Shown piece by piece: positions 33,501 to 60,434 of a DNA stretch of 64,000 bases. Both the position numbers and the translations under genes were made by a program. Every line of letters begins with the position of its first letter. Position 1 is the first letter of the stretch. The stretch is from Heteronotia binoei (Eukaryota). The notes beneath the pieces were generated by a model, which saw nothing but the letters and a program-made list of their open reading frames with translations, was not told the DNA's origin and did no database searches. The DNA lies in assembly GCF_032191835.1 (NCBI RefSeq), contig NC_083225.1:149544001-149608000 (forward strand), written 5' to 3'.

Positions 33501-36500
33501 TTCACAAGCAGAACATTTTGCCATGGATTGTTCCTTTGATAATCATTTTATTATCTATTAAACTTAACTGTTTCACTTTTGTTATCCGAGTTTTCCTCAA
33601 AAATGGCGAGCATAGCAACGCTGCACAGGGCTACTCCAGTCTATGTCTGTTGAAATCAATAGGCTTAGGCTGGAGAAACTGCATAGGACTGCACTGCATA
33701 CCTCATTTCACATAAAGGGCTCCTAACATGCTGGATTGGTCACACAAAAGGAATGGAAGGACTTCAACTTCCATTAATGGAAGATCTTTAACTACATGGT
33801 ATCTTTACTTTCTACTTCATAAAGAAGTGTAATTTGAAAGCTTCCACAACTTTACATTACTATACATCTGTTCATCAAAAACTTTATTGCCCTGTAAGCT
33901 ATAGAACCACAGGCTCAGGTTACAACCCTAACAACACTTTATTGGAAGCAAGCCTCGCTGATAATATGGGACCTACTATCGAGTAGATCTGTTTAGGATT
34001 ACTGGTGAAGTAAGCCAGTTTATGCTACTTACATGGAGCCCAACTCCGCAAGTTTTTCAACTGATTGCTCCAGATTCATTAGATTTAAACGCTTCAAACA
34101 CTGTTGTACCTGAAATAGAAAAAAATCACATATATTTTCACTTTACTTTGGATGATTAGCTTTAGAAACAAGTCTTTAATCTTGGAAGTCTTTACTTTTA
34201 TACATGAGCATAAGAAGAGCCCTGCTGGATCGGACTAATAGTCCATCTAGTCCACCATCCTGGCTCACCCAGTGGCCAACCAGTTCCTCTGGATGGCCAA
34301 CAACAGGGCATCGAGGCCAAAGCCTTCCCAATGTTACCTCCTGCCTCTGAATGTGAAGGTTCCCCTCAGTCACCATGGCTAGTAGCCACTGATAGACTTA
34401 TCCACCATGAATCTATCTAAGCCCCTTTTAAAGTTGTTTATTCCTGTAGTCATCACTACATCCTATGTCATTTCCACCTGTTGACCCAACATACAATTGT
34501 CTGAATTTCTAATCTATGACAAAGCAGCTAGTATAAATAAAAGGAACAGCATTCAAACACAAATTTACCAAGAACAAGATGGGTAGCCATGTTAGCCTGT
34601 CTGTACCAGCAGAAAAGAGCAAGAGTCCAGGTAGCACTGTAAAGAGTAACAGAATTTGTGGCAGGATCTGAGCTTTCATGAGTCACTGCTCACTTCTTCA
34701 GAAATATGAAATTTTGTTAGTCCTTAAGGTGCTACTGGACTCTTGCTCTTTTCTACTGGTACCATGAACAAACTGTCAAAAGTCCTCATCCCATCCCAGG
34801 CGAAGAACTTTACTGCTCTCAAAATTTTGCTCTACTATTAAAGAATAACATGGCTATCCATACAAATCTAAGTTCATACATTATCTTCATCATCCCTGAT
34901 ACATTTATTTATTTCCCTTGTGGCTCAGCAGGTTATAATTCCAAACATTAAAAATACACAAGATATAGTAAAAACCCATTTATAAACCTCCCCAAGAAAA
35001 TGACTGTAACATAAAGCCCATTAAAAGCCACTGTCTACAAAACACGCTTATAATATTTTCTTATAACTTCTAAAGTAATGCCTTTCTCAGGGAGCCTGCT
35101 CCACAAGCAGAGAGCTTCTATGCGCAAGGCATGGACCCTAGTCTGTCAAGTCAGTCAGAGGACTTGGATGAGATACTTCTACAGCAGATTGCAAAGTTCT
35201 CTAGGAGAAGGGATACAGTGATCATGGGAGATTTAAATTACCCAGAAGTCCAACTCTGCTAAAAATGAAAAGTCAAACAGATTCCTGACTTGTCTTGCAG
35301 GCAACTTCCTTTTCCATAAAGTGAGGAAGGAAACAAGGGGATCTGCTATCTTGGATTTTATTCTCACTCACAAGGAAGAATTGATTGAAGAAGTAGAAAT
35401 AGTGGGCACCCTGGGCAGTAGTGACCATGTGATTTTGGAATTTGCAGTCTTAGGGAAGGGAAAAGCTATACGTAGTCAGATTTATAGGTTGGACTTTAGA
35501 AAGGCAAACTTTGATAAACTTAGAACTATGCTGGGTAAAACCCCATGGTCAGAAATACTTAGGAGGAAGGGGGTTCAGGAAGGGTGGGAGTTTCTTAAAA
35601 GCAAAATACTGAAAGCGCAATCACAGATGATTCCTATGAGAAGAAAAAATGGAAAAAGCCTAAAGAAGTCAAAGTGGCTCCATATACAGCTCTCTAAAGA
35701 CTTGAAAGACTCCTTTAGGAATTGAAAGGAAGGCCTTATAACCAAGGATGAATATAAACAAATCACCAGTGCTTGCAGAGAAAAAGTTAGGAAAGCTAAA
35801 GCTCAATATGAGCTTAGGCTGGCCAAAGATGCTATAAACAACAGAAAAAGATTCTTTTCTTATGTTCAGAGTAAGAAAAAGAGCAAGGACACGGTAGGCC
35901 CATTGCGAGGGCAAGAAAGTGAAATTGTAACAGGTAATGAAGAGAGGGCAAAACTGCTCAATTCCTACTTTTCCTCAGTCTTCTCTTTTGAGGGAAACAG
36001 TGCTCAGCATGGCAAAAACAGAACATATAAGGAGGGTATGAACTTCCAACCTAGGATCAGCAGAGGGGTAATACATAAACACCTAGTTTCTGTAAATGAA
36101 ACTAAGTCCTCAGGGCCAGATGAATTGCACCCAAGGGTTCTAAAAGAGCTTGCGGATGTAATTTCTGAGCCTCTGGCTATTATTTTTGAGAATTCTTGGA
36201 GAACAGGAGAGGGGTTGGAAGATTGGAGGCGGGCAAATGTCCCCATCTTCAAGAAGGGGAAAAAAGACGATCCGAGTAACTACCGACCCGTCAGCTTGAC
36301 GTCTATACTTGGAATAGTTTTAGAACAAATCATCAAACAGGCGGTCCTGGAACATTAAAAAAGAATGGATGTGATTACTAAGAGCCAGCTTGGGTTTCTC
36401 AAGAACAAGTAATGTCAGACTAACCTGATCTCTTTTTTTGAGAAAGTGCTTACATTGCTGGATCAGGGTAATGCTGTAGACATCATTTATCTTGATTTCA

Positions 36501-38621
36501 GTAAGGCTTTTGATAAAGTTCCACATACCATCCTTGTTGACAAGTTGGCAAAATGTGGTTTGGATTGCACCCAAAGAGTGCTTGTGAATGGTTCCTCATC
36601 CTCTTGGAGAGGAGTGACAAGTTGAGTGCCTCAAGGATCTGTCCTGGGACCCGTTTTGTTCAGCATCTTTATCAATGATTTGGATGAAGGAATAGAGGGA
36701 ATGCTTATTAAATTTGCAAATGATACTAAATTGGGAGGGGTTGCAAACACAGAAGAAGACAGAAACAGGATACAGGATGACCTTGACAGGCTGGAAAACT
36801 GGGCTAAAATCAATAAAATGAATTTTAATGGGGATAAATGTAAAGTTCTGTGTTTAGGTAGGAAAAATCCAATGAATGGTTATAGGTTGAGGGAGACTTA
36901 TCTTAGCAGTAGTATGTGCAAAAAGGATCTAGGGGTTGGTATGATCTAGTGGATCATACGCTGAATATAAGTCAACGGTGTGATGCGATAGCTAAAAGGC
37001 AAATGCAATTTTGGGCTGTATCAACAGAGGTATAGTGTCCCGATCACGTGAAGTGATAGTATCGCTTTACTCTGCTCTGGTAAGACCTCACCTGGAGTAT
37101 TGTGTTCAGTTTTGGGCACCACATTTTAAGAAGGATATAGACAAGCTGGAATGGGTCCACAGAAGGGCGACGAAGATGGCGAGGGGTCTGGAGACCAAGT
37201 TCTATGAGGAAAGGTTGAAGGAGCTGGTGATGTTTAGCCTAGAGAGGAGGCAGCTGAGAGGTGATATGATCACCATCTTCAAGTACTTGAAGGGCTGTCA
37301 TATAGAGGATGGTGTGGAATTGTTTTCTGTGGGCCCGGAAGGTAGGACCAGAACCAGTGGGTTGAAATTAAATCAAAAGAGTTTCCGGCTCAACATTAGG
37401 AAGAACTTCCTGACCGTTAGAGCGATTCCTCAGTGGAACAGGCTTCCTTGGGAGGTGGTGGGCTCTCCTTCCTTGGAGGTTTTTAAACAGAGGCTAGATG
37501 GCCATCTGACAGCAATGAAGATCCTGTGAATTTAGGGGAAAGTGTTTGTGAGTTTCCTGCATTGTGCATGGGGTTGGACTAGATGACCCTAAAGGTCTCT
37601 TCCAACTCTATGATTCTAAGTGGGTTACATTAAGTGGAACAACCTGAAGGTGGCAACCAAAACAGCAGTTGACACAGGGGGACATATGGGAAGAAACAGC
37701 TCTTTAGACAGTGGGTCGCGAGAAATGGTGACTGACAACCAGAAGTTCAAACGGAAGAGTTCTTCTAATCATCATGCTTACATTAATTCTGAGGCTATTT
37801 TTATTTTCTGACCTGTCTGAGAGACCAATATGGCCTATGATGTCTCATTTGGTAGTAGAAATTATGCATGATGGCATGCAAAGTTTCTCCTTCTGCAACC
37901 ACAGCTTTACTTTTGAGAAGGTTCTTGACCACATGACACCTCTTCATAACAGATGAAAGGCATTTCACTAAAAAAGAAAAACATAGTAAGACACTTGTAT
38001 GCCACTGTGCAGTAATCCAGTTCAACAAAATAATTATCACAAGAAATGTGGCTCAGGCTCAGTTAAACTCTTTTTAAGCCCCCCCTTCAACTTGCTCCCA
38101 TAACTTCTGAGAGTTCACATCCACTTGAAAGTCAACATTTTTTTCAGTTCTCATGTTGAAAACGAACACATCAGATTCCCAGAATCCTTTAAAACCCAGA
38201 ATTCAAGGCTTTTAACAGAAGAGAGATGCAGTGCAATCTTGTGCACGTGTTTACTTGGAAATAAAAATGAAGTTAGCGAAGGACACTTTCGAGTAAATGC
38301 ATGTAGAATTGTAACATTCAGTATACGCCTCTTTTTCTAAACATGTTTAACTCTGACCGAGGCACAAACGTTAAATTTCTGAAATATACAGTGTTAATCA
38401 GCTAAATTCCAAAAGAGTCCAATACAGAAACCCAGCACGTCTGCAGCTAGCAAGCTTCAATGAACGCGCTCTCACATGATTTTAAGCTTAAGAGCCTTAC
38501 GACATCCCCACCCCTCTTCACCTGAGGGATGTAGGGCTGACACGGCTACCGTGCCGCTACAAGCGGGCCACGGAACATCCAGCTGATTCCACACCTCACC
38601 GCTGCCTGCGGGCGCCGCCAT
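24507..38621 (-). CDS. NEPRO: Nucleolus and neural progenitor protein (C3orf17); complement join(38522..38621,37813..37967,34033..34109,33263..33394,32625..32702,27668..28005,26908..26978,25858..26096,24507..24897), 526 aa
   Basis: Nine phase-consistent exons (1581 nt). Motifs [69 protein letters not shown] and C-terminal [12 protein letters not shown] match remembered vertebrate NEPRO. Confidence 0.94.
26370..26600 (+). mobile_element. CR1 3' fragment (TTCTTATG-tailed family)
   Basis: gaggtccatcagtggctattagccac...ccaacatggcttctctt matches the other copies. Confidence 0.75.
28295..30630 (+). mobile_element. TSD-flanked L1-related element without detectable RT (HAL1-like) in NEPRO intron 5
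   Basis: 16-bp TSD aaaagtaaaYgcttgt at 28279-28294 and 30631-30646, after TTTT (L1 endonuclease-type site). GC-rich 5' part, weak degenerate ORF1-like middle, long AT-rich 3' part with internal repeats ending accaataacatttttaa. Confidence 0.65.
30861..32512 (+). repeat. Copy 1 of a local direct duplication (partner 38992-40672)
   Basis: Collinear shared anchors, e.g. aaaatattaattttcct, tgaacagaagggg(g)aagagggagtttatattg, atttagatttataacaaataccatatccagtctttctcccca and atgacaggctgcttaaaagctctctt. Confidence 0.9.
32828..32964. mobile_element. Fully palindromic 137-bp hAT MITE
   Basis: CAGGGGTGGCCAAC...GTTGGCCACCCCTG with arms paired almost to the centre; perfect 8-bp TSD atttaggc at 32820-32827 and 32965-32972. 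Confidence 0.92.
34575..34760. mobile_element. Penelope-like short repeat with inverted arms (related fragments at about 10905, 16820, 53285 and 54390)
   Basis: Inverted arms agaaaagagcaagagtccag(g)tagcac (34611-34637) and gtgctactggactcttgctcttttct (34729-34754). The family assignment is from memory of reptile Penelope termini. Confidence 0.5.
35130..37620 (+). mobile_element. CR1 LINE, about 2.5 kb, 5'-truncated, ORF2 (EN C-terminus + RT) broken by stops and frameshifts; antisense in NEPRO intron 2
   Basis: ORF fragments with [55 protein letters not shown] and KFANDTKL; 3' end ccaactctatgattct. Confidence 0.95.
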
Positions 38622-41410: not shown

Positions 41411-44400
41411 ATGGGGAAAGGGGGAGGGCAGCCTTCTAGTATGCATTATAAAAAAGATCTTGTTAAGGTCTCATTAGCTGAGTTTCTTCAATACTATGAA
41501 CAGCCGATCAGTGAGGAACAAGCATGGGCTATTTGTTTCCAGTGTTGTTATAAAATGAGAGAGTTAATGGCTCAAGGAGGAGATTCTGTGTTAAAGATGA
41601 TAGTCTTGGAAGATATTAATAACCTTTACATCCATTCTGATGGTAGTGTGTCTTTCACTGTACAGCAAAGTTTGAGTGGTAAGAATGATAATTGGAAGCT
41701 ATTTATATTAGTCTTGTGTCTCTGTGGTTTTTTGGGGGAGGGTTTGTTTTTCACCATTAAGTGTATGTTCTCTTCATTATTTTTAAAACTCCTAGTATAT
41801 TTATCCAAAATTAGGTTCTATTACTATTATTTGGCCTTCAACCAAAACATATTCATTCAGGGGATAGAAAAGTGTTATTTCTAGAAGTATGAGAGTGCTC
41901 CTTTGCAGTAATTTGACAAATTTAGTGAAGGAATGGTTAAATGTGCAGCTAATTCCTTTCTGGTTTTACTCAGCTGTTTATAATGCTATATTATCGTTTT
42001 GCAATTAATTGTTGTGCTGTTATAGTATTCCTTGATTTGTTTTTGTGCCTCTTTGTGCAGTATGAAACATAAATCTTAAAAGTTTGATCCTGTTTGGTAA
42101 AAATTAAAGTAATGATAATTTCTTAGCTACAGGTGAAAATTTTCAGAAATGTTACAATACATGATTGTATGTGTATATGGGAACACAGCGAAAGTAGAGG
42201 GTTGCTTCACAACTGTTCAGTTCTTGATTTTCTGTGAATGTGGTGAGAATGCTACAGACAATGAAAATGAAGTTCTAGGAACAGTAGGCTTGTCAGGTCC
42301 AATTTAAGAAATATCTGGGGACTTTGGGGTGGAGCCAGGAGCAAGGGTGTGACAAACATTGGAGCCCCGTGGCGCAGAGTGTTACAGCTGCAGTACTGCA
42401 GTCCTAAGCTCTGCTCACGACCTGAGTTCGATCCCCAGTGGAAGCTGGGTTTTCAGGTAGCCGGCTTGAGGTTGATTCAGCCTTCCATCCTTCCGAGGTC
42501 GGTAAAATGAGTACCCAGCTTGCTGGGGGGGGGGAAGTGTAGATGACTGGGGAAGGCAATGGCAAACCACCCCATAAAAAGTCTGCCGTGAAAACATTGT
42601 GAAAGTAGCATCATCCCAGAGTCGAAAACGACTGATGCTTGCACAGGGGACCTTTCCTTTTCCATTGGAAATAAGGATGGGGGCACCTTTTGGGGGGGCT
42701 CATAGAATTGGACCCCCTGGTCCAATCTTTTTGAAACTTGGCAGGTATTTTGAGGAGAGGCACTGGAAGCTATGCTGAAAATTTGGTGCATCTACCTCAA
42801 AAAAGCAGCCCCCCGAAGCCCCAGATACACAGATCAATTTTCCATTATACCCTATGGGAATTGGTCTCAAAAGGGAATAATGGCGTGCCCAGCAGACATT
42901 TCCCTCCTCCGCACTTCTGATGACCCTGAAGTGGGGGGAGGGTCTTCAAACCACAGGATCCCCTGCCCCCGCCTGGGGATTGGCAACCCTAAGGGACAGC
43001 AAGGGGAAGAGATTAAATAGAATGTATGTAGAATGTCTTTTTGCAGTTCCTGCTTCCTATACTTATAATGCAGATTTGTGTGTTAGATGGAGAGCAGCTT
43101 CAAATGGTGCTGGCTTTGAGTTAAGCCTAGCTTTTTTGGGTAAGAGGCAATGAATTAAACTTCACAGGTATTACCAGATTCTAACAAGTCTGCACTCTTC
43201 AAATATTATACACTTTAACATTTCTTTTCCCAAAGGCTACTGAAAAAACTAAGGGCTTTTTTTGCTATTTTTTGTATTCTTCTGTCACCTTGCTCATGTA
43301 TCCTTTCTTTTTCTCTCTTTCTTGTTCCAGACAGTCACATGACTCAGCAGCAGAATGAAAGGTTGGAAGATATGGTAAGGCTCAAACAATTATATGTCCT
43401 GTATTCTAAGCTTCAGTGCAACACAGATTGGCCATGTCTCATATATGGTACTTTGGTTGCTTGTTGATGAAAGAATATATTGTCATCTTGCTAGTGCTGT
43501 TCTCAAAGGAGTATATTGGAGCAAAATGAATAATTAGACTATGGGAAAGTCCCTTCTGGATGGATAGGGCTCAGCAAGTATGTTCCTTTTCTGGGTACTC
43601 TCTACACAAGTGCAGTTCTGGGTTGAAGAACAGCTCTAATACGCTTGGGTCTGTCCAGTTACAGAAGCATGCTATCTGTTGTTCTTTCCAGGCTGCCTTG
43701 CTGAGCCTGTGGGCACAACTCAGATTTTGAGAGCAGGTAATAGGTGCCAAAAACAAGCTGCAGGGGTAAGGATCAGCTATAAAATATTTGAGAAGTTCTG
43801 TGGAAAGTATCTTTTTATTCCATGATCGAAATAATTTTGAAATCAGTGTTCTCTGTAGAGATCTCTCATGCTCTTCTAAAGTATTTTCTACTCCAGCAAA
43901 GTGTAGGGAAGCTCTTAATGGCTCTTCCTTTGGAGAAGAAACAAGTAGGCATCTGGAAATTGGGAGGGACCATGATGCCCATTGACACCATGTTAATGCT
44001 GGACATAATCCTGGGCCACCCTATGAGCACTCTTGAATAGGACTAAGACTGTACCTTTAAGAAGGGCTAGGTATTCACAGCTGAGTGCACAATCACATCT
44101 CTGGAAGAAATATTGGTTGGAGGCAAGCAATGCTTAGAATGGAGCTTAGACCTTCATGCTGAAGAGAGGAAGTGGGTTGTTCATCTAAAAGTGGAATAGG
44201 ATTTCCTGATGGGGTATAATAGTGTAAAATTATGCAATCATAGTAGGGTACCAGCAGCATAGGAATATCCCCTTAACTATCTAAATTATCCATTTGCGCA
44301 TGTTGTGGCCAGCTCATAGTGCCCAGGAGCAAGGAGTAGGAAGGCAAGAAATGTGAAATTGGCAGTGATGCATGTTGAAATGAAGAGTATTTATGCAGCT

Positions 44401-46954
44401 ATTCCTTGGAGGCTATCAATATAAATGGTTTGATAAAATTTGCATTGCTTCCAGTTTCCATCTGAAATTACCATTCAGCAACTGCTTCTATGGACAGAAA
44501 TTAAAATTCTGGAATTGTTAAGTTCTGCTGACTTATGCCATCTTTACCTTGTAAATGTTGGCAAAATTGAGGTTTATGGTCAGAAAGGGTAACATTTGAT
44601 TCTCTACGAAACTGGTTCCCTAGGAAACGATTTCTCTATGCCTTAGTCTGATGTTGTCTTTTTGAATTAATAGGGTATCCCTGAATTTCCTTTATAGCTC
44701 ACAGAACTACTGGGAAAGTTGGTTTACAGAGCACTGGACTGGGGAATTGAGAGCCATATGGAGAGAGAGTTGAGTGAGTCCTTGGAGAAGCTAATATCCT
44801 TTATGCTGAAGTTGAATCTAGAGGCAACACAGTCAGCAGTGACTTTCCAAGATGTCATCAAGGTTTTGCTTTTGCTTTTATTTCTATAATCTAGCTACAC
44901 TTTTAGGCATTCATTCTTGCTCTGCCCAGGCCTCAGATTCAGTGGGAGCTCACAAGAGCGCAGCTCCTGAACCTTTCTGAGAGTTCCACCTCCTTGTCCA
45001 TTGAATAGTATGTGCAGCTGCATAATAATCCCTGGATGAGCTCCACCACCTATTTTTCTACAAAATGACCCCTGGCTGTGCCTGAATCTCCATTTTAGAA
45101 TAGGGAAACTGGTTTGTGCTGTAAAAATTGCAATGGCTTTTTACAATGGAAAAATGGAATGGGAAGAGGAAATTCGGACTATATTATGGGTTCTTAGTAC
45201 TCCAATGGACAGGAAGCAAAGGAGAAGAAAGCCATGTATGTACCATGCACATACTTCTTGTGTGTACTATGCACATACTTCAAGTAATTGCCCAAGTATG
45301 TGTGTTTTTGTGCCATTCTAACTGTCTAAATGAATGGTAATATCTTAAAGCTAGATATTTTAAGGTTCTCTGGGAAAGATGGATGTAGAAGTTTTATTTC
45401 CGAAATAGAGGACTTGTGATGGATTATGGGTAGCTTGTTTTTTTCATGCCTGCCTGATAATCAGCAGACAGCATAGCATGGGAAGGCTATTGGTAATACC
45501 AGGCTGACTCCCTGTGATTAGAAATTCTCTTCTCCTTTATGATGTTCAGTCCTTTGGAACCTAAATAAACTTGAACTCTGTATTCTATTTCATTATAAAT
45601 CTTTTAAACAGGAATCCAGAGATAACTTCTCCTTTTTCATTTTAGATCTGTGAAGATCACTTTCTCAAGCCTTCTGAAGCTGCTGATCATTACACCGTGA
45701 TCTGTCGAGTGCTCTTTGCTGAGTACATAGAACTTCAGAAGCTCATGTTGACCATACAGAGATGCAAAGAGGTATTTTGGAATGCAGATGTAGTGTCCAC
45801 CTGTTTTCTTCCATTGCAACATTTTCATTGTGTTGTCTTTTGAAGCTGGAAGAAAAGTTATACAAGGGGTTAGGAGAAGATGTAGTCTAACTGCTTTGGT
45901 AGAACAAACAAATTACAAAAGTCTTTTAATGTCTTTCAGTATTTGGGAAGAATGGATGTTGAAGACTGCTGTCCAAGGCAGAAGGCTAATGATTGGGTAG
46001 GGATAACCGTTTGGCTTGTTTCATATTAAGTTTTACGTTTTAAAAGTTCTCATTGAATTGATGAAAACTCATACATACAGCAATTACTGTCCTGTAGGGA
46101 ACAATGTGTGAAAATTCAAGTAACCCCAACAACTGCCTGGCTAGATTAAAGGTCCATCTAGTCCAGAATTCTGCCAACTGGATGACTTGGGAGATTCATT
46201 GGCAGGGAATGTGGCATCACCAACCAAAGTTGGCCCAGTTATATACCATTTCACTCTCTTAAGTGCATTGCCTACTTTCCCAAGCAATGGGAATGAGTGT
46301 CTTTAAAATATTTTGCTTAAAGCAGAGCACCACAGAGGGAGGGGCAGTAAATATACCCGTGTAAATAGGCACTTGTAGATTGTATCGGATTCCCACACAC
46401 AGCCTCCCTTCAAGATTTGACACGTTCCAGCTGAGGCTATCTGGTTTCATCTTTGAACTTCCTGTGGCTTCTAGCTGCTGCTATACCACTCCTGTAACTT
46501 TTAGGATCATTTATTCCAAAAGCTGCTGAGTAATTCCTATTCCTCCATCATTGGCTTCCACAAAAGCATCAACCAACCATCCTAGAATACCACCTATCTG
46601 GGAGCTGGCCAGAACCTGCAGTGCTATATCTCTATGTGCCTCTTTCCCAAACCCCTTCAGTGATTCTGTGCAATCTGCAGTGCTGTGTATGATGGGTGTT
46701 CATGTGGCCCTCACTAGTTTCATTCAAGGGACAGTTCAGTTGTGATACTCCTTTTTTTTTTTAAGGAAAGAGAAAACTAATTGCTCCCCGTGCAGATTAG
46801 GCTAGTCAGAGGCTGGTGTCACCTGTGTCCCAAATCTGTTGCCTCCTATAGCCATTCTGCTGATATTTTCATGTAGAACATAAGAACATAAGAGAAGCCA
46901 TGTTAGATCAGGCCAATGGCCCATCCAGTCCAACATTCTGTGTCACACAGCGGC

Positions 46955-47027
<73 letters not shown>

Positions 47028-50000
47028 TGTGGCTAATAGCCACTGATGGACCTCTGCTCCATATTTTTATCTAACCCCTTCTTGAAGGTGGCTATGCTTG
47101 TGGACGCCACCACCTCCTGTGGCAGTGAATTCCACATGTTAATCACCCTTTGGGTGAAGAAGTACTTCCTTTTATCCGTTTTAACCTGTCTGCTCAGCAA
47201 TTTCATCGAATGCCCACGAGTTCTTGTATTGTGAGAAAGGGAGAAAAGTACTTCTTTCTCTACTTTCTCCATCCCATGCATTATCTTGTAAACTTCTATC
47301 ATGTCACCCCTCAGTCGACGTTTCTCCAAGCTAAAGAGCCCTAAGCGTTTCAACCTTTCTTCATAGGGAAGGTGTTCCAGCCCTTTAATCATTTTAGTTG
47401 CCCTTTTCTGAACTTTCTCCAATGCTATAATATCCTTTTTGAGGTGCGGCGACCAGAACTGCACACAGTACTCCAAATGAGACCGCACCATCGATTTATA
47501 CAGAGGCATTATGATACTGGCTGATTTGTTTTCAATTCCCTTCCTAATAATTCCCAGCATGGCGTTGGCCTTTTTTATTGCAAACGCACACTGTCTTGAC
47601 ATTTTCAGTGAATTATCTACCATGACCCCAAGATCTCTCTCTTGGTCTGTCTCTGCCAGTTCACACCCCATCAACTTGTATTTGTAGCTGGGATTCTTGG
47701 CCCCAATGTGCATTACTTTGCACTTGGCCACATTGAACCGCATCTGCCACGTTGACGCCCATGTAGTGTTAAGCAACTGCTTTTTGGAGTAGAGGAGACT
47801 AATGAATTAGATTGTAATTTAAAGGCAAATGTTAAAGTTTCTGTAATGAATACTTCAGCCTAAGTCCTGTCCATACAACTGTTATGCAAGTTCTTGTACC
47901 TATGGCAATGCAGAGACAGTTTAAGTAAGGAACTCCGACCTGAGTCTCTGAATGTATGACACTTTCATATTAACAGTCATTTGCTATATTAAATGCCGGG
48001 TACCATCTTGGTAAAATATGTTCTTCAATCTGAGCTTCCTTTTTAGGCTGATTTATGGCAAGATGTACTTGGTGGCTTGCAGAAGGGTGCGAGGCTCCAC
48101 AAGGCCATGGAACACCCACAGCCCAGGACTTCTTTGAAACAGTGTTCCTGCTCTCTGTATGATACAGTGGTAGATGATATCAAAAATAAACACTACACCC
48201 TCCATAAGGTGAGTAGTATTGGCCAGGTAGGGGTGCCAGCCTCCAGGTGGGATCTGGGGACCCCCCAGAATTCCAGCTTATCTCCATTCTAACTGCGATC
48301 CTTCCCGCTAGAGAAAAATGGATGCTTTGGGGAGTGGACTCTATGGCATTGTACCCATCTGTACTCTTCATCCCCAAAGCTCCAGAAGTTTCCCAACCTG
48401 AAGTTGCCCCCCCGCCAGTCAGCTGGCCACTCATTTTATTATGCACCCTTATTTGTCATCGTTGGAGTGTATTATACTTCGTACTTGGTAAAGATGAAAC
48501 TGCTCACTGACATGCCTGTCTCAGAATTATGGTCTTGTCAAACAAACCACATTTACTGTGTTATATCACAACACAGTCTTGTATTGGACCAACATTTTTT
48601 TTAAAAAAACCCTGTTGTATCCTTTTGGCTTTGTACTTTTCATAGTACCCCATCCCCTAGAGAAGAAGACCTTTAGCTTTGATTCATTGTGTTTATTTGA
48701 GGGCCAAAGCAAGGAGGAGGATACGTACGCTATATCCAAGAGATAATCGGAGTTTTTGAAGTGGCTATCCTCAGTGCAGTGTGTATGAGTGAGAAAAGAC
48801 TTCTGGAGAAGGTTGAACATTGGCATACAGGAGCACAGCATTAAAAAAAGAAAACCTTGGATAGAACTGATGGGTGACAGCCATTGTTAAAACTTGGCTC
48901 ATGCTCTCTGCCCCTCACCGATTTTGTGGTATTATTGGCAAGCTTTGTTACCAGCAATGAAAGCAGTTTATTTTCTTAGAGTGAATATAGGGATAAAATG
49001 TGTTATTTTCAGTTTCCATCCAAAGCACATCTGAACCTTAATGTTAACCTAGGGTTCTTTTTTGTGTTTGAAGGCATGAAGAAAACATTTGCATCAACAG
49101 TGTAGTAGGCAGGGCTTCTTTTGAGCAGGAACGCACAGGAATGCAGTTCCAGCTGGCTTGGCCAGTGCTCCGGCTAAAAAAAAGTCTCCAGCAGAGGGAA
49201 GGCGCTAGGCAGCCATGCACTCCCAGACCACGCACTCCATCCTCTCTGCCACCTCCAGCCTCCCAATCGGCTTGTGAAGAGAACAAGAGATAAATTCATA
49301 GAACATGGTCATGTAAAGAGATGTGGAGCCGCCCATGAGCTTCCTGGGAGAAGCTGGGCCTTTGCAATTGCAGCCAAGAATCATTTTGTTTTTACATTGT
49401 TTGTGCTGCAGCTAACACTTCTTTTGGGTTTTTTTTTTTGTAGTACTTCCTCCAGTGTTTTAAATGTATAAGGGTTTTCTGCAACCCTGGGTATCTTCCC
49501 AAAGTTGCAGAAATATTTCTCAACTTTTTACATGATATTTTAACAAAAAGATTTATTATACAAAATATCAAAATGTTGACTATGCAAAGTAAAGAGATAG
49601 TAATATGTGACAGTCTATATATTTTAAGAAAGTATAGCAGATGCAGACTTGTATTTTTTGAAAGTATTCTCTATGCAGATTAAGACTGATTTGTAATCTT
49701 TATTTCTTATCCCTTCTTATCCCCTATTCCTAATTCTTTGAAACTAATAAAAACTTTTAAAATCAGAACATTGTAAGAGCTACATTTGTTTGTTTACCAC
49801 AGGAGTGAAATTGTTGCCTCTTGGCAATACAGTTCTTAGAGAGTTAGACTCTTCTAAATCCATGGACCTCAACAGGCTGAGAAATGAGTAACTCTATTTA
49901 CGATTACACTGTCAGTATCTAACTAAATGGCTTAGGCTTATGATGTTCTTTCAACATCTTCATAACAAATCTGACTTTGTTTGGCAGGCATCGACACGGC

Positions 50001-53000
50001 AACTGAGAGAGAGAGTCTGCCAGGCACCCAGTCTGCATGATCAGCTCATGATGGAAGTGAAAAAGCCCCCGAAGCTTCGACCAGTCTCTGCACACAAAAG
50101 TAAAAACAAACAAAAAGGTATACAATACCTTAGATGTGAACAACGACTAAAATAGCTTAGTTATTCAAATGACTGAAATGCCTAAGTGACTTATAAAGGC
50201 GGTACCTTTGTAATGTAATGTAATGTAAAATTTTATTTATACCCCGCCCTCCCCCGCCAGAGCAGGCTCAGGGCGGCTTACAACATTTAAAATGAACAAT
50301 ACAATAATAAAACATTAAGAACACATTAAAACCAATCAGTGATTAAAACATTCCTAGACTAACAGTGGCGGTAAGCATTATTAATTTAGCAGTAAACATT
50401 GGTACCATCATTAATGAACGCCTGTTTGAAGAGGGCGGTCTTGCAGGCCCTGCGGAACTGATCTAAGTTCCGCAGGGCCCGCACCTCCTCTGGGAGCTGG
50501 TTCCAGAGTTGTGGGGCTGCGGCGGAAAAGGCCCGAGTGCGGGTGCTTTGCAGTTTTACTTCTTTCGGCCCAGGGATATTCAGTTTATTTTTGCCTACTG
50601 ACCTCAGTGCTCTCTGGGGCTCATATGGGGAGAGACGGTCCCTCAGGTAGGTCGGTCCTTGGCCATATAGGGCTTTAAAGGTTATGACCAGCACTTTGTA
50701 CCGGATCCGGTATACAATCGGCAGCCAGTGCAGTCCGCGCAGCCCAGGCCGTATATGCCTCCATCTTGGAAGACCAAGTAGTAGCCTGGCTGCTGCATTC
50801 TGCACTAGCTGCAGTTCCCGGGTCCGGTATAGAGGCAGCCCCATGTAGAGAGCGTTACAGTAGTCCAGTCTTGAGGTGACCGTCGCATGGATCGCCATCG
50901 CTAGGTCCTGCCGCTCTAGGAAAGGGGCCAACTGCCTCGCCCGCCTCAGATGAAAGAATGCTGACTTGGCAGTGGCTGTTATCTGGGCCTCCATTGATAA
51001 TGAAGGCTCCAGTAAAACACCCAGGCTCTTCACCCGTTGCGCCGTCTTCAGTGGCGCCCCGTCAAAGGCCGGGAGAGATATTTCCTTCCCCAGAGTGCCA
51101 CGACCCACCTGGAGAACCTCTGTCTTCGCTGGGTTCAACTTCAGCCCGCTCAGTCTGAGCCACGTTGCAACAGCCTGCAAAGCCCGGTCCAGGTTCCCCG
51201 GGGCGGAGGCGGGCCGGCCGTCCATTAGTAGATAGAGCTGGGTGTCATCTGCATATTGATGGCTTGATGTGGTTCTGCTTCTGTTAATCATGGTTCTATA
51301 TAGGAACTGTAAAGGAAAGAAGCAGTGTCTATGTAAATAAAGGCATTTAGCTATTTAACAGCTCTTACTGGTGGTTCAAATCTTTCAGAACGAGGAAATG
51401 TTAGGTAGAACAAATACTTTGTGATGACAATACAGTCGTTTGAAAAACCGCATTCAGAATTCTGGTCTGCGGTACACTGCTCATTATAGTAGTGTCCAAT
51501 GATATGCATATGTGAGTGTGCTGTCACAGTATCAGTTATAATTTCTCACATTCCCTTTCAATAGAGTCTCTTCAGGTTTAGCTACCAGTAGTCAAATGAT
51601 ACATGTGTAACTAGCCCAAAGTAATTGATGTTATTAAGTGATCTTGCAGTGACTGGTATTAGGGGGACAGTGTTTTTTATTGAGCAAATGGATAGTTTAA
51701 ATAAGTTAAATAGATGACACCAAAACTGGAGAATAAGCTCCTCAAAAAGAGTTAAGCTTCAGAAAAGTCACAAACAGTGCAGTTCTAAGCAAAATTGTAC
51801 TGTGAACGTTATTTGAAAGTTCATTGGGCTCCAAAACCTAATTTGTGAAATATCAGATATACCAGCACAAAAGTTGAACGTGTCTTGTTCAAGAAAGGTG
51901 GGGACAGAGAGGCAAGGGAGAAGTTATTGACAGCTGATAAAACTGCACATATTGGTGATATTTGCCCAAAGGGGCAAACTCTGGATTCTAGAATGTGAGA
52001 TTAAATGGAAGGAAGCGTTGAGAACTGTTGAAGGGGAATTTGGACACAAAAAGAGAAAACAGTTTGAACCCAGCTTTTGCCAAATAAACATTCTGTATTA
52101 AGCTGGGAAATCAATTCAGATTTGTCTCTGCAGCCTTACCTTGGCAGAAACACAGCATACATGACTAGTTTTGTTTGCTTTATTTACATGCATCCTTTTT
52201 CTTTTGTTGCCTTATGATGTGTTCTGTGGCTTTTCAGAAGACTTTGGCAAGTTCTCCTCAAATACTCCATGTGATATCATCCTTGACCAAAATGTTGGCT
52301 CAAATATAACTGTTTCAAAAGCTAAAAAGCTAAGGTTGAGTTGCATCCAGTCAGATCCCGAACTTAAGGTATTTTTTTTCTTACCACAGGGTACTGTAAT
52401 GAAAACAAAAATTCTGTATTGGTATCCAGTTTTCCTTGCAATATGTCGTCTAGGTGGGTGGGTTTGCAGCTTTCTATCTCTTCAGTCTCACTAAATGTAG
52501 TGATTGTAACCATTCATTTCTGCAGGGATCTCCAAGTACCAAAATATTTAGCTCTGATTTTTACAGAGAACCTGCAGTGGAAGAACTGCAGGGGACCTGA
52601 CTAAGTTTTAATAGCTAGGATTCTGCGGTTCAAGCAGATTGTTCCGTGTGCAACTGAATTATGTCACATGTTGCCACTAATGCAGTTCTCCAGTGTTCCT
52701 GTAGCTCCAATCATGCTTTTCTGTTGTATATTTATTGGTAAATTATTAGTATTTTGAACTCCTAAACAAACACCTTTAGCACATATTTTTGACAAACTGT
52801 GTTCTACAAAACTTGAATCAGTTCTGTGTGGGCAAGCTAAAACTAATGTGCAAAAGTAAAATTTAAAATATCCCTCAGTATTCAGGTAAACCTTGTTTAC
52901 TGTGAGCTCAGCCAGTATTAATGCATTTGACTTGTATATTTTGAAGTGCACTTTTAGGCAATTGCTTCTTTCTCCTGTGAAATTGGTGGGTACTAAATAT

Positions 53001-56000
53001 TTAATTTTGACTTAAGTTGTTCCTGCAGTGTTAAAGGTCATAAGAGAAACACTAGAGCATCTTCAGCAGATTATTTGCCAGACTCTGTAGACACATGGTA
53101 TATTGTCCTTTTCTAGAACCACATAATTGATCAGCAAAGTGTATTAAAGTCCTCTTAAGAAAAGTACACGTCTGAGGTTAATACAGGCTTGGAGATGGCT
53201 TCATTCTATCTCTGTTACACCTGCAGGTGAAGTTTTTGTTGCCATTATTACTGATATCATTTTAAGATGAACTTGCTTAGGTATCTAGAGTGAAGTTTGA
53301 GCCCAGTGACACCTTTAAGACCAACAAAGTTCTGTTCAAGGTCTAAACTTTTTTTGTGTTAAAACAATTTTTATTGGTAACATATGGCAGTTATATCTAA
53401 TACTAACAAAATATTAATAATTACTTAATGGCTTCCCCATACATTACCCTTTTCCCTTCCCCTCCCCCCCAGTCTTAATTATAAACATTGGTAACATAAG
53501 GTAACAATTTCTATTTCTACATCCTTAATCATTTTTCACCACCATCCCCTATATTACTTTCTAATTACCCTCCCCCCGTTACTTGGCTCCCGCTGATGAT
53601 AATAATTCAAAATAATAATATTTAAAGGTAATCTATTCTAATCAAGAACCAATATTTATACTCTATCTTCTAAAACTTAATCTTAATCATTATCAAAAAC
53701 TAACATTTAAAGATACACTTAACTACTAAAACCAAAAATTAGTATTCTTCTTTCTTCTAAGACTTAATCATTATCAAAAATTGTCCAATGTCCTTTTACT
53801 TTCCACTCTTTTTCTGCATATCTTCTAAATTTTTTCCACTCCATCTTAAAAACCTCCAAATCATAGTCTCTTAAAGTTCTTGTTAATTTGTCCATTTCAC
53901 TCCATGTCATAACTCTAAGGTCTAAGCTTTCATGTGCCAGCACACTTCTGCAGATACATGCTGCACCAAATAAATTACATTAAAAACTGTAAGATCTGTG
54001 AATGGCAATAAATTAGCATGAAATACAAGGATTTGAGGGACGGTGGCTCAGTGGTAGAACATCTGCTTGGTAAGCAGAAGGTCCCAAGTTCAATCCCTGG
54101 CATCTCCAACTAAAAAGGGTCCAGGCAAGTAGGTGTGAAAAACCTCAGCTTGAGACCCTGGAGAGCCGTTGCCATTCTGAGTAGACAATACTGATTTTGA
54201 TGGAACAAGGGTTTGATTCAGTATAAGGCAGCTTCATATGTTCAATTAACAAAAAGACCCTACCAATTATCTTAATCCAATCTCAGCTAGTACCCAGTAC
54301 TTACACATCTTGACTCTACCTGGCCTTTCCTGACAACCAACCCGCCCTCTCTTCTTATTTGTAATGGTTGAGGAAATTCTGTTTCACTGTATCTGAGGAA
54401 GTGCACTTGTACACGAAAGCTTAGAATTTGAATAAAACTTTGTTGGCCTTAAAGGTGTCACTGGACTCAAACCTTGTTCTGCTGCTTCAGTCCAACACCT
54501 GCATCTGTGTTCTAGAGTGCTTAGTTTAAATTGTTGCACAAATACATTAAAAATGATCAGATTCCTTTACACCAATACCGGAGAGTAGCGTTCAGTTTTA
54601 GCTTTAAAAAAGAGATGACAGACAAAGCTTTGATTTCTTGGCTTCATTCCTAGTTGTTGTCTACTTGCACTCGGAAGCCATCTACAAGATGGTCATTACC
54701 AACCCTTGCAGATTTGATGGGAACAAGATTTGCAGAACATGTGGCTGAAATGAAGGATTCCAGCCAAAGAGTCAGTATATTTTCTTCAAGGTTGCAGGTA
54801 CTTCAAAGGAACATTGCTACCTCTTCCTGATTTATTTCTTCCAGAAATGTCACTCTTGTCTTGTAAACTTGATCACATCATTTAAGCTTCCAAATCATTG
54901 ACTACAAATTGGTCATTTTAAAAAATTTTCCTGGTTTAAATTTAAAATACCAGTTTGCTCTCCCTTCCCAAGCATCATAAATATCACTGGTCTTGGTTTC
55001 ATAGTTACTGGAACAAATCTAAAGATTCAATCCAAAGCAGTGCAAACAGGATACAATGAAGGACTGCCTCCTCCCACGTTGTCCAGTCCACCAGTTAAGA
55101 TCGGCCAGAAACAGGTCTGTGGGAGCTAAGAGGGCACCAGTGAGGATTGTAACTTGGTGTAAGAGTGAGGCTCCAGACAGAAATTTCTTGTTCACATTTG
55201 ACTGTGTCTGGAAAGCCCTTGGAAGAAAGGCCAAGTGAACCCTCATTACTCACTGGCAAGTACATAAGGCCTTTGGGACTAGGGATGGCTGGCATCCCTG
55301 GAAGCTTTCAGGGCATAACGTCAACCCTCTGAAAGCTCCATGGTATTACTGCAGGTTTCCAGAGTGTTGGCTGTCTTTGCGGCTGAGTTTTCACCAGGAT
55401 TTGACATCATGTTGCTCTACATCATGTCTGCCTCCCCCCCACACACACACTATTTTTCCCACTGTCCTGGGTGCAAGGGCAGAAGGAGGGCCAGGCTGTC
55501 CAGAGATCATTCACCAGAACCAGGCAGATGGCATGCCTGTTTGGAACCCAGTTGTTTCCCACCCTACTTTAGATGAAGCTTCTCTATTTATTTAACCACA
55601 TTAAAATTTTGGTGCTAGTGCACCCATTGGGGTTGAGAAAGAAGTTGCCAGCCCTGAAGCGATCTTTTTCCTTGGAAATCAAGATTTAGAATATGCTACT
55701 GATCTACGTGCTGTCACACCAAACAGAATTGGAACTTCTACAGATTTTATCATCTTGTACTGCAAAAACTTGGCAACTCACTTGTTGCTTTCCATTCCCT
55801 TACAGGTTTGTCTTGCTTGCCATAATGAGTTGTTTATATGGCCTTACATTTGTCATCTTTGTAGCAGGTAAGCTGATTTGAAGCTCTTTTTTATGATTGG
55901 ATGAAACAGGTTTTCCTGTAGTTCACACTAATATAATATTCTATCAAGCCTTATACCCATTCCAGTCAAGATGGGAGCGAATATAATGTTTGAACTCTAT

Positions 56001-59000
56001 GACTAATCATAAAGATAAAGCACCAGTCGTTTCCATCTCCAGGGTGATGTTGCTTCACAGCGTTTTCATGGTAGACTTTTTGCAGGGTAGTTTGCCATTG
56101 TCTTCCCCAGTCATCTTCACTTTTCCTCCAGCAAGCTGGGTACTCATTTTACTGAGCTCCGGAAGGCTGAGTCAACCTTGAGCTGGCTACCTGAACCTAG
56201 CTTCCGCTGGCATCAAACTCAGGTCATGATCAAAAAGCTTGGACTGCAATACTGCAGCTTTACCACTCTGCACCATGAGACTGCACCATAAATTAGCTGT
56301 GGAAGACTCTTCACTTGATCTTCTACTAACTGGCCTTTAAATGCTATTGTAGCTATTACGTGTCCACCACATGGAAGTCTTCAGTGAACATATGAAGCCA
56401 CTGTAAAATCACATCACACCATCAGCCCTTCCACCTTGTCCTTATCTGTTCTGATTTGCAGCAGATCTCCAGGATCTCTGGCAGAGAGAGGACTTTCCAG
56501 TTACTTGAGATTTAGTTTATTTCCCAGGATCTTTGGGGTGTGCTTTGCTAAACAGACCTTCCCAGAGAAAGTAAAACACCCCAAAATGTATACTGCCTAA
56601 AAATGGGTGATCTTCTGCTTTCAGTTTTTTATTAACATTCATGGACAATTCTCTGTTGACATGCACTTATTGCTAATACTTGCTTTGCAGCTCGCCTGCT
56701 TGTAAGCATGAATGTTGTTGGAGTATACACAGGGATATTGGGGGGTGGGGCAGGATTCTAGGAGCCTGTTCTGTTTTCTCAGATCTCAGTCCACTCCAAA
56801 GGATTTCTGTACGAGTGGCATCCTAGCACGTACTGAGACAGATCACAACCTTATGCCCTCCACCCCACTCATGCTCCCATTCCATATTACCACAACTATT
56901 GACTGGCTGCACCTTTTTTATGTAAAGGGTCAGAATTGTTCACTGTTGCTTTCTCAGTGGATACTGTTACATGTCCACAGGAGTTCATAAAATCAGTGCC
57001 AGACTTCAGTGTCAACACCACTTCCAAAAATCAGCAATCCACAATTGCAGTATTAAAGTCCTGAAGGTGTAGGGTATATTTTAACGCCCCCCCCCCAATA
57101 GCTGTTTTGACTCAGATGGCTAGCCTTTCTACAATGAAGCCCAAGTCATTTCAGACAGATGTCCTAACCACAGGTTTGTTGACCTGAAACTGTCAAGGCC
57201 TGGGGCCTTCCTAAATGTAGGGCTCAAATAATTTTTTCATTGGATATACGAACATTAACTTTTATGTTGAAAGACTGGGAATTGATTCTGCCCTCTAGGC
57301 TCTGACAAGTGCTTGCTGGAGCTGTTGGGCAATTCTCTTCTACCATTTGAGCAGGGCTTTTTTGGTAGAAAAAGCCCAGCAGGAACTCATTTGCATATTA
57401 GGCCACACCCCTGATATCACCATTGTTTCACACAGGGCTTTTTGGTAGAAAAAGCCCAGCAGATGCTCGTTTACATATTAGGCCACACCGCCTGAGGCCA
57501 TGCCAGCTGGAATTGTGTTCCTGTGCGTTCCTGCTCAAAAAAAGCCTTGCATTTGAGAAATATGAGCATTTTCTTGCCATTGCCCCAATTCAAGCCTTTA
57601 ATGGTAACATGTGAAATAACTGTGCTGCAAACCCACAACAATATATAAAGAAACTGTGAGAACCAGTGCTTGTTTTACTCGTTAGTATCATGGCAACTAA
57701 GTGTCTTATGTCTTTCATTTTAGAGTGAACTGTAAGGATTGCTGTGTGAAGGTATGTTTTCCTCTTTCAATAGGTTATTGATCCATGAAAGGTCCTCTCC
57801 TCTTGTTCCAAGACTACTAACCTTTGTGGGAACCTTTTGAAGAATTTTGTTTAAATACTTTTTAAGAACATAAGAGAAGCCATGTTGGATCAGGCCAATG
57901 GCCCATCCAGTCCAACACTGTGTCACACAGTGGCCAAAAGACCCAAGTGCCATTAAGAGGTCCACCATTGGGGCTAGAAGCCCTTCCACTGTGCCACCCC
58001 CCCCCGCCAAGCACAAGAATACAGAGCATCACTGCCCCAGACAGAGTTCCAACAATAAGCTGTGGCTAATAGCCACTGAGGGACCTCTGCTCCATATGCT
58101 TATCCATTCCCCTCTTGAAGCTCTCTGTACTTGTAGCCACCACCACCTCCTGTGGCAGTGAGTTTGTATCTGAACTTCCAAAAAGCTCCTGCTCTGAGTA
58201 GCATGCTGCCTGGCTTCCAATATATTTAAAAGCTTGTTTTAAAAAATTAGCAATTTATCCCCAAATTCATTCTTGACATACCATGTTGCAGAGTTACATT
58301 TGGTGCAGCAGTCCCTTGTTTTGTTTGAGGGTTTGCGTGCAGTTGCCCTGAATCCTGCAATCTTTCTAAATACAGCCTGGTTGTATGCATGCATATGATA
58401 AACAATTGATACAGATGTCCAGAGATGACCATGCTGTGGGCCCAGTCAGGATCTGGTCCATGTTTCATTTTTAAATTACTTCATTAGGATTTAAAAATGG
58501 CAGCAGCATCAACAGGTCAGACCTGTGAACGCTGTCACATCTAGTTTGCCCCTCACTAGCATAACAGACAGGTGCCATTTGGAAAACCTTAATATGTGTT
58601 GTGTGGATTGCCACACTGACTTATAGCCAGTATATGAAATTCCCACATCATAATACAAATTAAGTTAACGTCTCCTTGAAGAAGGTTTCAGCATCCTGAG
58701 TGAGGGTAATGCAAAGGATGTGATGGGTGTACAAAGACTGCATGACTGTTTTCTATAGTTGGTAAAAGTAGTCCTCTGTGTAAGCACCAGTCGTTGCTGG
58801 CCCAAGGGGTGATGTCACATCAGGACATTTTCTTGGTAGACTTTTTAACGGTGGTTTGCGAGTGCCTTCCCCAATAATCTACACTTTACCTCCAGCAAGC
58901 TGGGTACTCATTTTACTGATCTCGGAAGGATGGAAGGCTGAGTCAATCCTGAGCTGCCTACCTGAACCTAGCTTCTGCTGGGATCGAACTGAGGTCGTGA

Positions 59001-60434
59001 GCAGAGCTTGGACTGCAATATCACAGCCTACCACTCTGCACCATGGGGCTCCTTCTATAGTTGGTACTGTTCACTAAATGCCATGACATTCTTCTCTTAG
59101 GTGACGATGCCAGTCAGGCCCTGCATACGCCTTCCACTTAACTTTTTCAAAATCATAAGATTCAGCAAAGAAGATCTGGCCCTACAAGGTCAGAAAACTC
59201 CACAGCTGTTATATGAAATAGAACACTGGGATTGTTCAAGGTAGGAGTTCAAAAGCCTACATCACTATGTATCCATAGGGCAAAATGCTAACTGCACTAA
59301 ATACTCTGTGTGTGTTCAAAAAATGGGATCTGACTCTTAGGTGGAATAGAGAAAATCAAAGAAACTGTGGCTATGAATTTGTATCTTGAAAATAATCCTT
59401 CAGAAGTAGACTAATTTATAGATGCCAGTTCAGAGAGCCACATTTAGGAGCAAATAATATATGCCACTAGAACTACATTCTGACTCAACTTTAGCTCTTC
59501 AGAATCCCACTTCATTTCCCAAGATGCTATTAATAACAAATGAGCATTATAGTCTTTCTCCTTAGAAAAAAAACGGCATCAAACAGTTAAAAGGGGAAAC
59601 AAGAATTGTATATAGGCTACCACCATCTTTGGCTCCTTCTTGCATTCATATCCTGCACCTGCAGCCTTTTACTGTGATGAAAATCATCATGTGGTCAAGG
59701 TCTCCCTTAGAACCCTGTGAATGGTGTTCAATACCCACTTCTAAATGCAGGTGGGTATAGTGCCTTTGGAGTAGCAGATCTCACTGCAGTCCAAAACAGG
59801 CTGTCAAATTGTCACTTGCTTGGTTCTTCTGGGTCAGTAAGGACTTCCATTTAATTTTGCTACTGCAAACTAACATGGCTATCCATCTGGAATTATTATC
59901 AGGGATTTATCTGTTCCACTTGTTATAAGAGACACCTGCATGTTTCATAAACTGCAGCAGGTAAAGGATACAGTCTCTATAATTAGCCTGTAAGTTTCCA
60001 GAATGCCATTGTGTTGAGAACAGAAGTCACACACACAAAAAAATATGAATTAGCAATATTTCTAGTAAATGAAGGCCTACCAAGGCAGCCTTTAAAAATA
60101 TTAAGGGAATAGTTTGTAAAGAAGTCCCAGGGAATTAGTTCTATACAGCCACTGCCTTATAGACCCTTTCTGACACTAGAGGGGAATGGATCCAGGGCTG
60201 TTAGAAAAGACTGAAAATAAATTCTTCCTTTTTGTAACTTCTAGAGTACCTCTGGTGCTTGAACCTCATTGCTTAACACCGCCCCTTGCATCTCGCACTA
60301 GAAGCATGATGAACTGGCCATCTCTGGACATCTGTATCAAATGTGAACAACACCTTCTGGAGATCCTCTCCCGTCAGGTTCAGCAGAAGAGTACTTGTAA
60401 GAAGAGATCCTTGTCGTGGACTGAATGGGAATAA
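41411..60434 (+). CDS. Divergent Spire-family actin nucleator (KIND + 3 WH2 + Spir-box + FYVE-type); join(41411..41678,43331..43374,44698..44862,45646..45771,45940..45996,48047..48208,49988..50117,52238..52368,54654..54797,55806..55867,57724..57751,59101..59240,60245..60434), about 548 aa
   Basis: Thirteen GT-AG exons join into one open frame of 1647 nt. KIND: [59 protein letters not shown]2: [56 protein letters not shown]. Spir-box-like: [22 protein letters not shown]-type Cys pairs: CLAC, CHLC, CKDCC, CIKC. The linker exons between 50118 and 54653 are less certain, and an upstream coding exon is not excluded. Confidence 0.88.
42285..42991. mobile_element. hAT-type MITE with a nested Sauria/Squam1-type SINE (about 42361-42660, +)
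   Basis: Termini taggcttgtca...tggcaacccta; TSD aggaacag/agggacag. The SINE has head ggagccccgtggcgcagagtg, B-box gagttcgatcccc and the ggggaaggcaatggcaaaccacc segment. Confidence 0.8.
46877..47759 (-). mobile_element. Young 5'-truncated CR1 with an uninterrupted RT C-terminal ORF, antisense in Spire-like intron 5
   Basis: ORF 47033-47776 without stops ([32 protein letters not shown]); TSD catgtag at 46870-46876 and 47760-47766; (TTCTTATG)n tail. Confidence 0.95.
46958..47027. repeat. (TA)n(CA)n microsatellite inside the CR1 3' UTR
   Basis: Directly visible dinucleotide runs. Confidence 0.95.
50212..51270 (-). mobile_element. L2-clade LINE, 5'-truncated at the YADD motif, open ORF, (TTACA)n tail
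   Basis: ORF 50386-51291 with [38 protein letters not shown] and LHWLPI; (gtaat)n on plus at about 50210-50228. Confidence 0.92.
53352..53916 (-). mobile_element. 5'-truncated L1 3' fragment (same family as 20296-22728) inserted into a Penelope-like repeat
   Basis: Shares ttaatcattatcaaaaattgtccaatgtcctttta with 20513-20550; TSD aaggtctaaRcttt at 53338-53351 and 53917-53930. Confidence 0.85.
54035..54245 (+). mobile_element. tRNA-derived SINE (Squam3-like)
   Basis: A-box tggctcagtgg, B-box gttcaatcc, then a non-tRNA body ending cagcttcatatgttca. Confidence 0.8.
56035..56278 (-). mobile_element. Sauria/Squam1-type SINE (another copy at about 58815-59052, -)
   Basis: gcaagctgggtactcattttactga...gctgagtcaacc is the reverse complement of the 42361 copy. 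Confidence 0.8.
57352..57546. mobile_element. hAT MITE (CAGGGCTTTTT family) with internal duplication
   Basis: cagggctttttttggtagaaaaagcccagcag occurs twice; reverse-oriented relative of 39021-39214. Confidence 0.75.
57865..58160 (-). mobile_element. CR1 3' fragment (TTCTTATG-tailed family)
   Basis: aagaacataagagaagccatgttggatcaggccaatggcccatcc. Confidence 0.8.

Follow-up and report, generated by a model that had tools for sequence, protein, structure and literature searches.

A SPIRE3 orthologue in the gecko Heteronotia binoei: an intact and expressed third Spire paralogue beside NEPRO

The locus described here lies in a window of 64,000 nucleotides (nt) from the gecko Heteronotia binoei (NCBI RefSeq assembly GCF_032191835.1, contig NC_083225.1, positions 149,544,001 to 149,608,000 of the forward strand). 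By the window we mean this whole stretch, and positions are counted from its first letter. Our subject is a Spire-family gene on the forward strand, next to NEPRO, which an original prediction made from the letters alone had read as 13 GT-AG exons with one open frame of about 548 amino acids (aa). We defined the exons by a HMMER scan with exon 1, which led to Spire-family proteins, followed by tblastn and a phase-aware AG/GT search. The predicted gene structure was recovered: 13 exons, bounded by canonical AG/GT sites and compatible in phase, run from an ATG at 41411 to a stop at 60432-60434 (+) in a single 548-aa frame. The exons are listed below, with joints seen in RNA sequencing (RNA-seq) reads.

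41411..41678, + strand: exon 1, aa 1-89 plus 1 nt; start codon and N-terminal KIND (EEQAWA); Pfam KIND match, E 4.5e-16; donor GTG/gtaaga
43331..43374, + strand: exon 2, 44 nt, aa 90-104; KIND loop; found by homology-guided junction search, conserved in Eublepharis
44698..44862, + strand: exon 3, aa 105-159; KIND core (YRALDWG, ERELS); Pfam KIND match, E 1.8e-9; RNA-seq reads in runs X5 and X7
45646..45771, + strand: exon 4, 42 codons, aa 160-201; C-terminal KIND; RNA-seq joint 45771>45940
45940..45996, + strand: exon 5, aa 202-220; linker, bounded by an RNA-seq joint at either end
48047..48208, + strand: exon 6, aa 221-274; WH2-A (…GARLHKA) and WH2-B (12 protein letters, not shown), from alignment; joints 45996>48047 and 48208>49988
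49988..50117, + strand: exon 7, 43 codons plus 1 nt, aa 275-317; counterpart of linker 3, followed by WH2-D (19 protein letters, not shown), from alignment; joint 48208>49988, 11 reads
52238..52368, + strand: exon 8, aa 318-361; variable centre of the protein, where the myosin-V motif survives only in degenerate form; highest ratio of nonsynonymous to synonymous substitution rates (dN/dS), 0.80
54654..54797, + strand: exon 9, aa 362-409; divergent Spir-box helix, from alignment and a predicted helix (model residues 10-28)
55806..55867, + strand: exon 10, aa 410-429; FYVE cysteines C411, C414, C425, C428
57724..57751, + strand: exon 11, 28 nt, aa 430-439; FYVE cysteines C433, C436
59101..59240, + strand: exon 12, aa 440-485; FYVE insert conserved within SPIRE3
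60245..60434, + strand: exon 13, aa 486-548, then the stop codon; final zinc pair C516, C519 and the C-terminal helix

The 548-aa model matches the RefSeq entry 'protein spire homolog 1-like' of H. binoei (P0174) at 100% identity, and this name is exactly the automated label that had been foreseen. The assembly locus (GCA_032191835.1, CM063327.1) shows 0 mismatches to the window across 32,590 bases, the window contains no N, and the annotated gene range of 19,024 bp is equal in length to window 41411-60434. An alternative exon 6 donor at 48226, which would give 554 aa, was ruled out by the RNA-seq joint at 48208, which gives 548 aa. The 42-codon KIND exon and the 43-codon+1 WH2-D exon of the original prediction are exons 4 and 7. 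The gene is not a retrocopy, as had also been claimed, because its 13 exons are separated by introns. Exon boundaries agree among gecko, goose, turtle, Xenopus and Eublepharis SPIRE3, and published work describes identical exon-intron structures for the SPIRE paralogues except in the variable centre (10.1101/591974).

The protein reads, from its N-terminus, KIND, WH2-A, WH2-B, linker 3, WH2-D, a short central region, a divergent Spir-box and a FYVE-type finger. This is the order that had been predicted, and it is upheld by Pfam KIND and by alignment with SPIRE1, SPIRE2 and SPIRE3. Pfam KIND matches the two exons noted above, and the full protein matches KIND PF16474 at 1.3e-40; the best PDB match of exon 1 is the KIND domain of human SPIRE1 (1e-8). 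In the alignment, the KIND motifs EEQAWA, Y.ALD.G and ERELS..L are invariant. Of the four WH2 motifs of SPIRE1 and SPIRE2, A, B and D are recognisable, with conserved L237, D264, I265, Y270, L272, H291, E297, K299, K303 and L304; linker 3 of SPIRE1 has its counterpart directly behind WH2-B, which gives an array of A, B, L3, D. The Spir-box is followed by a complete set of eight zinc-binding cysteines. The WH2-A/B/D residues, linker 3 and all eight FYVE cysteines are common to SPIRE1-3. The Pfam WH2 and FYVE models found no match in this protein, but this is uninformative because SPIRE1 and SPIRE2 also score KIND alone. An AlphaFold model of residues 370-548, the Spir-box/FYVE C-terminus, consists of an N-terminal helix and a zinc region. 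Its top structural matches are the C-termini of SPIRE1 and SPIRE2 (E 3e-7 to 2e-4, template modelling score about 0.5), followed by fly Spire and then by the Rab effectors Rabenosyn-5, Slp3 and Noc2.

To this shared architecture the gecko protein adds several differences from vertebrate SPIRE1 and SPIRE2. It has a short C-terminus, it lacks WH2-C and the acidic KIND insert (absent from SPIRE3 in the alignment), its myosin-V motif appears eroded, and SPIRE3 is only 27-30% identical to SPIRE1/2.

We placed the protein in a maximum-likelihood (ML) tree of 43 proteins (IQ-TREE, LG+C20). It groups with Paroedura and Eublepharis inside a 100/100 clade whose stem measures 1.03 substitutions per site, and whose members come from squamates, turtles, crocodilians, birds, frogs, a caecilian and the coelacanth and include Xenopus laevis Eg6. 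SPIRE1 (99/98) and SPIRE2 (100/100), together with lamprey, form a group apart from this clade. The long stem does not affect the separateness of the SPIRE3 clade, but it may affect the position of the root. Thus, the separate 100/100 clade bears out the claim of a third Spire paralogue distinct from SPIRE1 and SPIRE2. Retention in sauropsids and loss in mammals had been suggested as well; the tree and the published loss agree with this, but the clade is wider than proposed and takes in amphibians and the coelacanth. It had also been expected that this assembly would hold SPIRE1 and SPIRE2 at loci of their own, and this was borne out for SPIRE1. H. binoei SPIRE1, with isoforms of 743 and 795 aa, is a 118-kb gene on another, 138.6-Mb chromosome-scale sequence, and no H. 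binoei SPIRE2 was found among the protein matches listed. As a Chrysemys fragment matches SPIRE2 at 77% identity, sauropsids keep SPIRE2 too.

The gene evolves fast but is conserved where its domains lie. Substitution rates were estimated from one gecko pair, Heteronotia versus Eublepharis, with all 13 exons mapped and 540 codons compared. Whole-gene dN/dS was 0.21 by NG86 (bootstrap confidence interval 0.15-0.28) and 0.30 by ML. By region, it was 0.14 in KIND, 0.14 in WH2-A/B, 0.31 in the WH2-D exon, 0.80 in the central region and 0.19 in the Spir-box/FYVE part. Heteronotia SPIRE3 is 85% identical to that of Paroedura (SPIRE1, 93%), 59% to that of Liasis (SPIRE1, 84%) and 44% to that of Alligator (SPIRE1, 84%), so that SPIRE3 diverges about 2-3x faster than SPIRE1 over the same species pairs. 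Because its identity is low compared with SPIRE1 and its domain dN/dS is also low, SPIRE3 is fast-evolving yet constrained across its domains. A fast-evolving intact gene was what had been predicted, and dN/dS well below 1 indicates purifying selection.

Raw RNA-seq reads labelled as the same species were mapped onto window 44650-50200 only. Exons 3-7 were covered at a depth of about 2-13 in two runs of one sample. Junction support, a check suggested along with the original prediction, came from spliced reads at three joints: 45771>45940 (5 reads), 45996>48047 (5) and 48208>49988 (11). The transcript differs from the assembly at three fixed positions (44724, 48163 and 49993), all third-position, 3/3 synonymous and present in all reads. 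This suggests that the RNA-seq individual belongs to a different lineage, or is a different individual, within the species complex.

Two neighbouring genes lie upstream of SPIRE3:

~19079-19180 and ~22929-23117, + strand: TAF13 exons, 94-100% protein identity to goose
24507 to ~38621, - strand: NEPRO (Pfam NEPRO_N), head-to-head with SPIRE3

The head-to-head pair of NEPRO and SPIRE3 is also present in Chrysemys, Anser and Eublepharis, and TAF13 (Pfam TFIID-18kDa) lies beyond NEPRO in Anser and Eublepharis. The predicted adjacency to NEPRO, with a conserved TAF13 nearby, is therefore real, and the adjacency to NEPRO is kept in geckos, turtle and goose.

We conclude, with a probability of about 0.9, that the gene is the H. 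binoei orthologue of SPIRE3, the third gnathostome Spire paralogue, and that it is intact, spliced, expressed and under purifying selection. Its exon structure, RefSeq identity, clade, synteny, transcription and selective constraint are direct observations. A number of findings weigh against this conclusion. The KIND score is half the level of SPIRE1/2 (about 140 versus about 270 bits). The gecko gene has no WH2-C: RNA joins exon 6 directly to exon 7, and a search of intron 6 for a WH2-C remnant found nothing above shuffled controls. The myosin-V binding motif keeps its basic half only (KAKKLRL aligns), and the acidic 'APTLAE' is missing or degenerate. The C-terminal AlphaFold model is only moderately confident (predicted local distance difference test, 61.6), and a Foldseek search of the PDB with this model returned nothing significant, its top rows being FYVE, rabphilin and melanophilin at E ~0.3. 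One run from a second sample contained no exon reads; expression is therefore tissue- or sample-restricted. The Xenopus locus has PEPCK, not NEPRO, within 10 kb upstream, and the local synteny of Xenopus Eg6 alone does not confirm orthology.

Could the gene instead be a divergent SPIRE1 or SPIRE2 orthologue? Database names such as 'spire homolog 1-like' or '2-like' point that way, but we find this extremely improbable given the separate 100/100 clade with its stem of 1.03 substitutions per site. SPIRE1 identity is already refuted by the true SPIRE1 elsewhere in the same assembly, and the turtle fragment that is 77% identical to SPIRE2 indicates that sauropsids keep that gene as well. It is also very unlikely that we are looking at a decaying or functionless copy drifting under relaxed constraint. 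Divergence 2-3x faster than that of SPIRE1, a central dN/dS of 0.80, the lost WH2-C exon and the eroded myosin-V motif are what such a copy could display, but the frame is intact across many lineages, dN/dS within domains is 0.14-0.19, transcripts are spliced, the single-nucleotide polymorphisms are all synonymous and all eight zinc ligands are retained.

A third alternative concerns function rather than identity. The protein could be functional but re-purposed: perhaps no longer a real nucleator, it might regulate formins, sequester actin monomers or serve as a Rab effector that has lost its tie to myosin V. WH2-C is missing from gecko SPIRE3, and Quinlan is said to have found in 2005 that C-L3-D is the strongest nucleating unit of fly Spire. 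The degenerate myosin-V motif, the long stem branch and the SPIRE3-specific conserved inserts in the FYVE region also fit a changed role. However, linker 3 is kept directly after WH2-B, which leaves a B-L3-D tandem; the WH2 exons have dN/dS of 0.14-0.31; and two WH2 motifs suffice for nucleation (PMC11231147). On balance we regard re-purposing as unlikely, though a good deal less so than the other two alternatives.

We also propose how the protein might work. By analogy with SPIRE1, SPIRE2 and Drosophila Spire, its KIND domain would dock the C-terminal tail of FMN-type formins. WH2-A, B and D, with linker 3 directly after B, would bind actin monomers and so seed filaments, and the Spir-box and FYVE-type finger may anchor the protein to vesicle membranes marked by Rab proteins. 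In squamates, erosion of the binding motif makes a link to myosin V doubtful. Thus, the protein is probably an actin nucleator with three WH2 motifs that sits on vesicles and cooperates with formins, its coupling to myosin V being doubtful. The most likely setting would be a germline or oocyte role, by orthology with the maternal, vegetally localised Eg6 mRNA of Xenopus. More tentative still is a fuller version of this idea, which we think possible but would not bet on: a germline or oocyte Spire that in squamates, lacking the WH2-C exon (B-L3-D core) and myosin-V coupling, would serve as a myosin-independent nucleation module, its loss in mammals and euteleosts tracking changes in how oocytes are organised.

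The original prediction falls short on novelty alone. SPIRE1-3 were defined in jawed vertebrates by Kollmar et al. (bioRxiv 2019, 10.1101/591974), who also report SPIRE3 in chimaera; its loss from mammals and euteleosts was reported in 2019 and 2024 (10.1101/591974; Commun Biol 2024, PMC11231147), as was the absence of the third WH2 from sauropsid SPIRE3; and the gene model is public. The gene and its subfamily are already known, and its discovery adds little beyond the published phylogeny. The literature mentioning SPIRE3 that we searched contains no functional study of SPIRE3 and does not mention Xenopus or Eg6. Our additions are modest: Eg6 belongs to the SPIRE3 clade, squamates have lost the whole WH2-C exon, which leaves a B-L3-D arrangement, their myosin-V motif appears eroded, and the gecko gene is spliced and under purifying selection.

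Compared with the published SPIRE3 subfamily (chicken Gg-SPIRE3), the gecko gene shares the clade, the domain order, the missing third WH2 and the pattern of retention in birds and reptiles and loss in mammals. Nothing categorical sets it apart, but its WH2-C exon has gone without trace and its central region is much shorter than in turtle, crocodilian and bird SPIRE3 (whole protein, 548 versus about 630 aa). WH2-C is a separate small exon of 75-87 nt in goose and Xenopus, is degenerate in turtles and crocodilians, and is intact in Xenopus Eg6. X. laevis Eg6/pEg6 lies in the same 100/100 clade and has KIND, WH2, Spir-box and FYVE. It differs from the gecko gene in keeping WH2-C on its own small exon, in its longer centre and in its upstream neighbour PEPCK within 10 kb. 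Eg6 is the sole clade member with published expression and localisation data. Quinlan et al. 2007 (PMC2064741), with reference to Le Goff et al. 2006, call it 'Xenopus Spir-2' and note that its maternal mRNA is vegetal, which is the one clue to function in the clade.

Spire biology is known almost wholly from two mammalian genes and the fly. With its trimmed WH2 array and apparently eroded myosin-V motif, this expressed squamate gene is a natural variant that could help to tell the parts of Spire used in nucleation from those used in transport. Recognising Eg6 as a SPIRE3 member would also clear up database names ('spire 1-like', '2-like', 'spire1.S'). Eg6 itself is 'Eg6' in UniRef and 'spire-type actin nucleation factor 1 S homeolog' at NCBI. 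The names of SPIRE3 orthologues (P0183, P0177, P0189, P0246, P0218) are inconsistent: besides the NCBI name of Eg6 they include 'spire homolog 1', '1-like', '2', '2-like' and, in Platysternon, 'chitotriosidase-1'. Name-based orthology of non-mammalian Spire genes is unreliable.

Two squamate gene models deserve comment. In Eublepharis macularius, L005:12412-12672 holds a conserved homologue of SPIRE3 exon 1 (68/87 aa identical); the RefSeq model P0185 has a different start, and the range given for its gene runs into NEPRO. P0185 is probably mis-annotated at its 5' end. In the snake Liasis olivaceus, WH2-A is truncated in isoform 1 (P0152), and the WH2-A/B exon is missing altogether from isoform 2 (P0002). 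Further loss of WH2 motifs in snake SPIRE3 is one possible reading, and an error of annotation is another.

In the window, TAF13 (15755-23117, +) and NEPRO (24507-38621, -) are arranged tail-to-tail, and the head-to-head spacing between NEPRO and SPIRE3 is about 2.8 kb. These two genes may share a bidirectional promoter region. Reverse-transcriptase fragments of long interspersed nuclear elements (LINEs) lie at 46880-47800 (intron 5, -), 50386-51291 (intron 7, -) and 35321-37529 (+), with open reading frames of 247, 301 and 107-172 aa, respectively, and an (AT)n/(AC)n microsatellite, passed over as a repeat in the read mapping, lies at 46950-47035. High read depth in 46880-47800 and 44836-45200 stems from repeats. 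RNA-seq depth over the intron 5 LINE copy is hundreds-fold in all runs, with many variant positions, and therefore reflects transcripts of the repeat family and not of the SPIRE3 locus.

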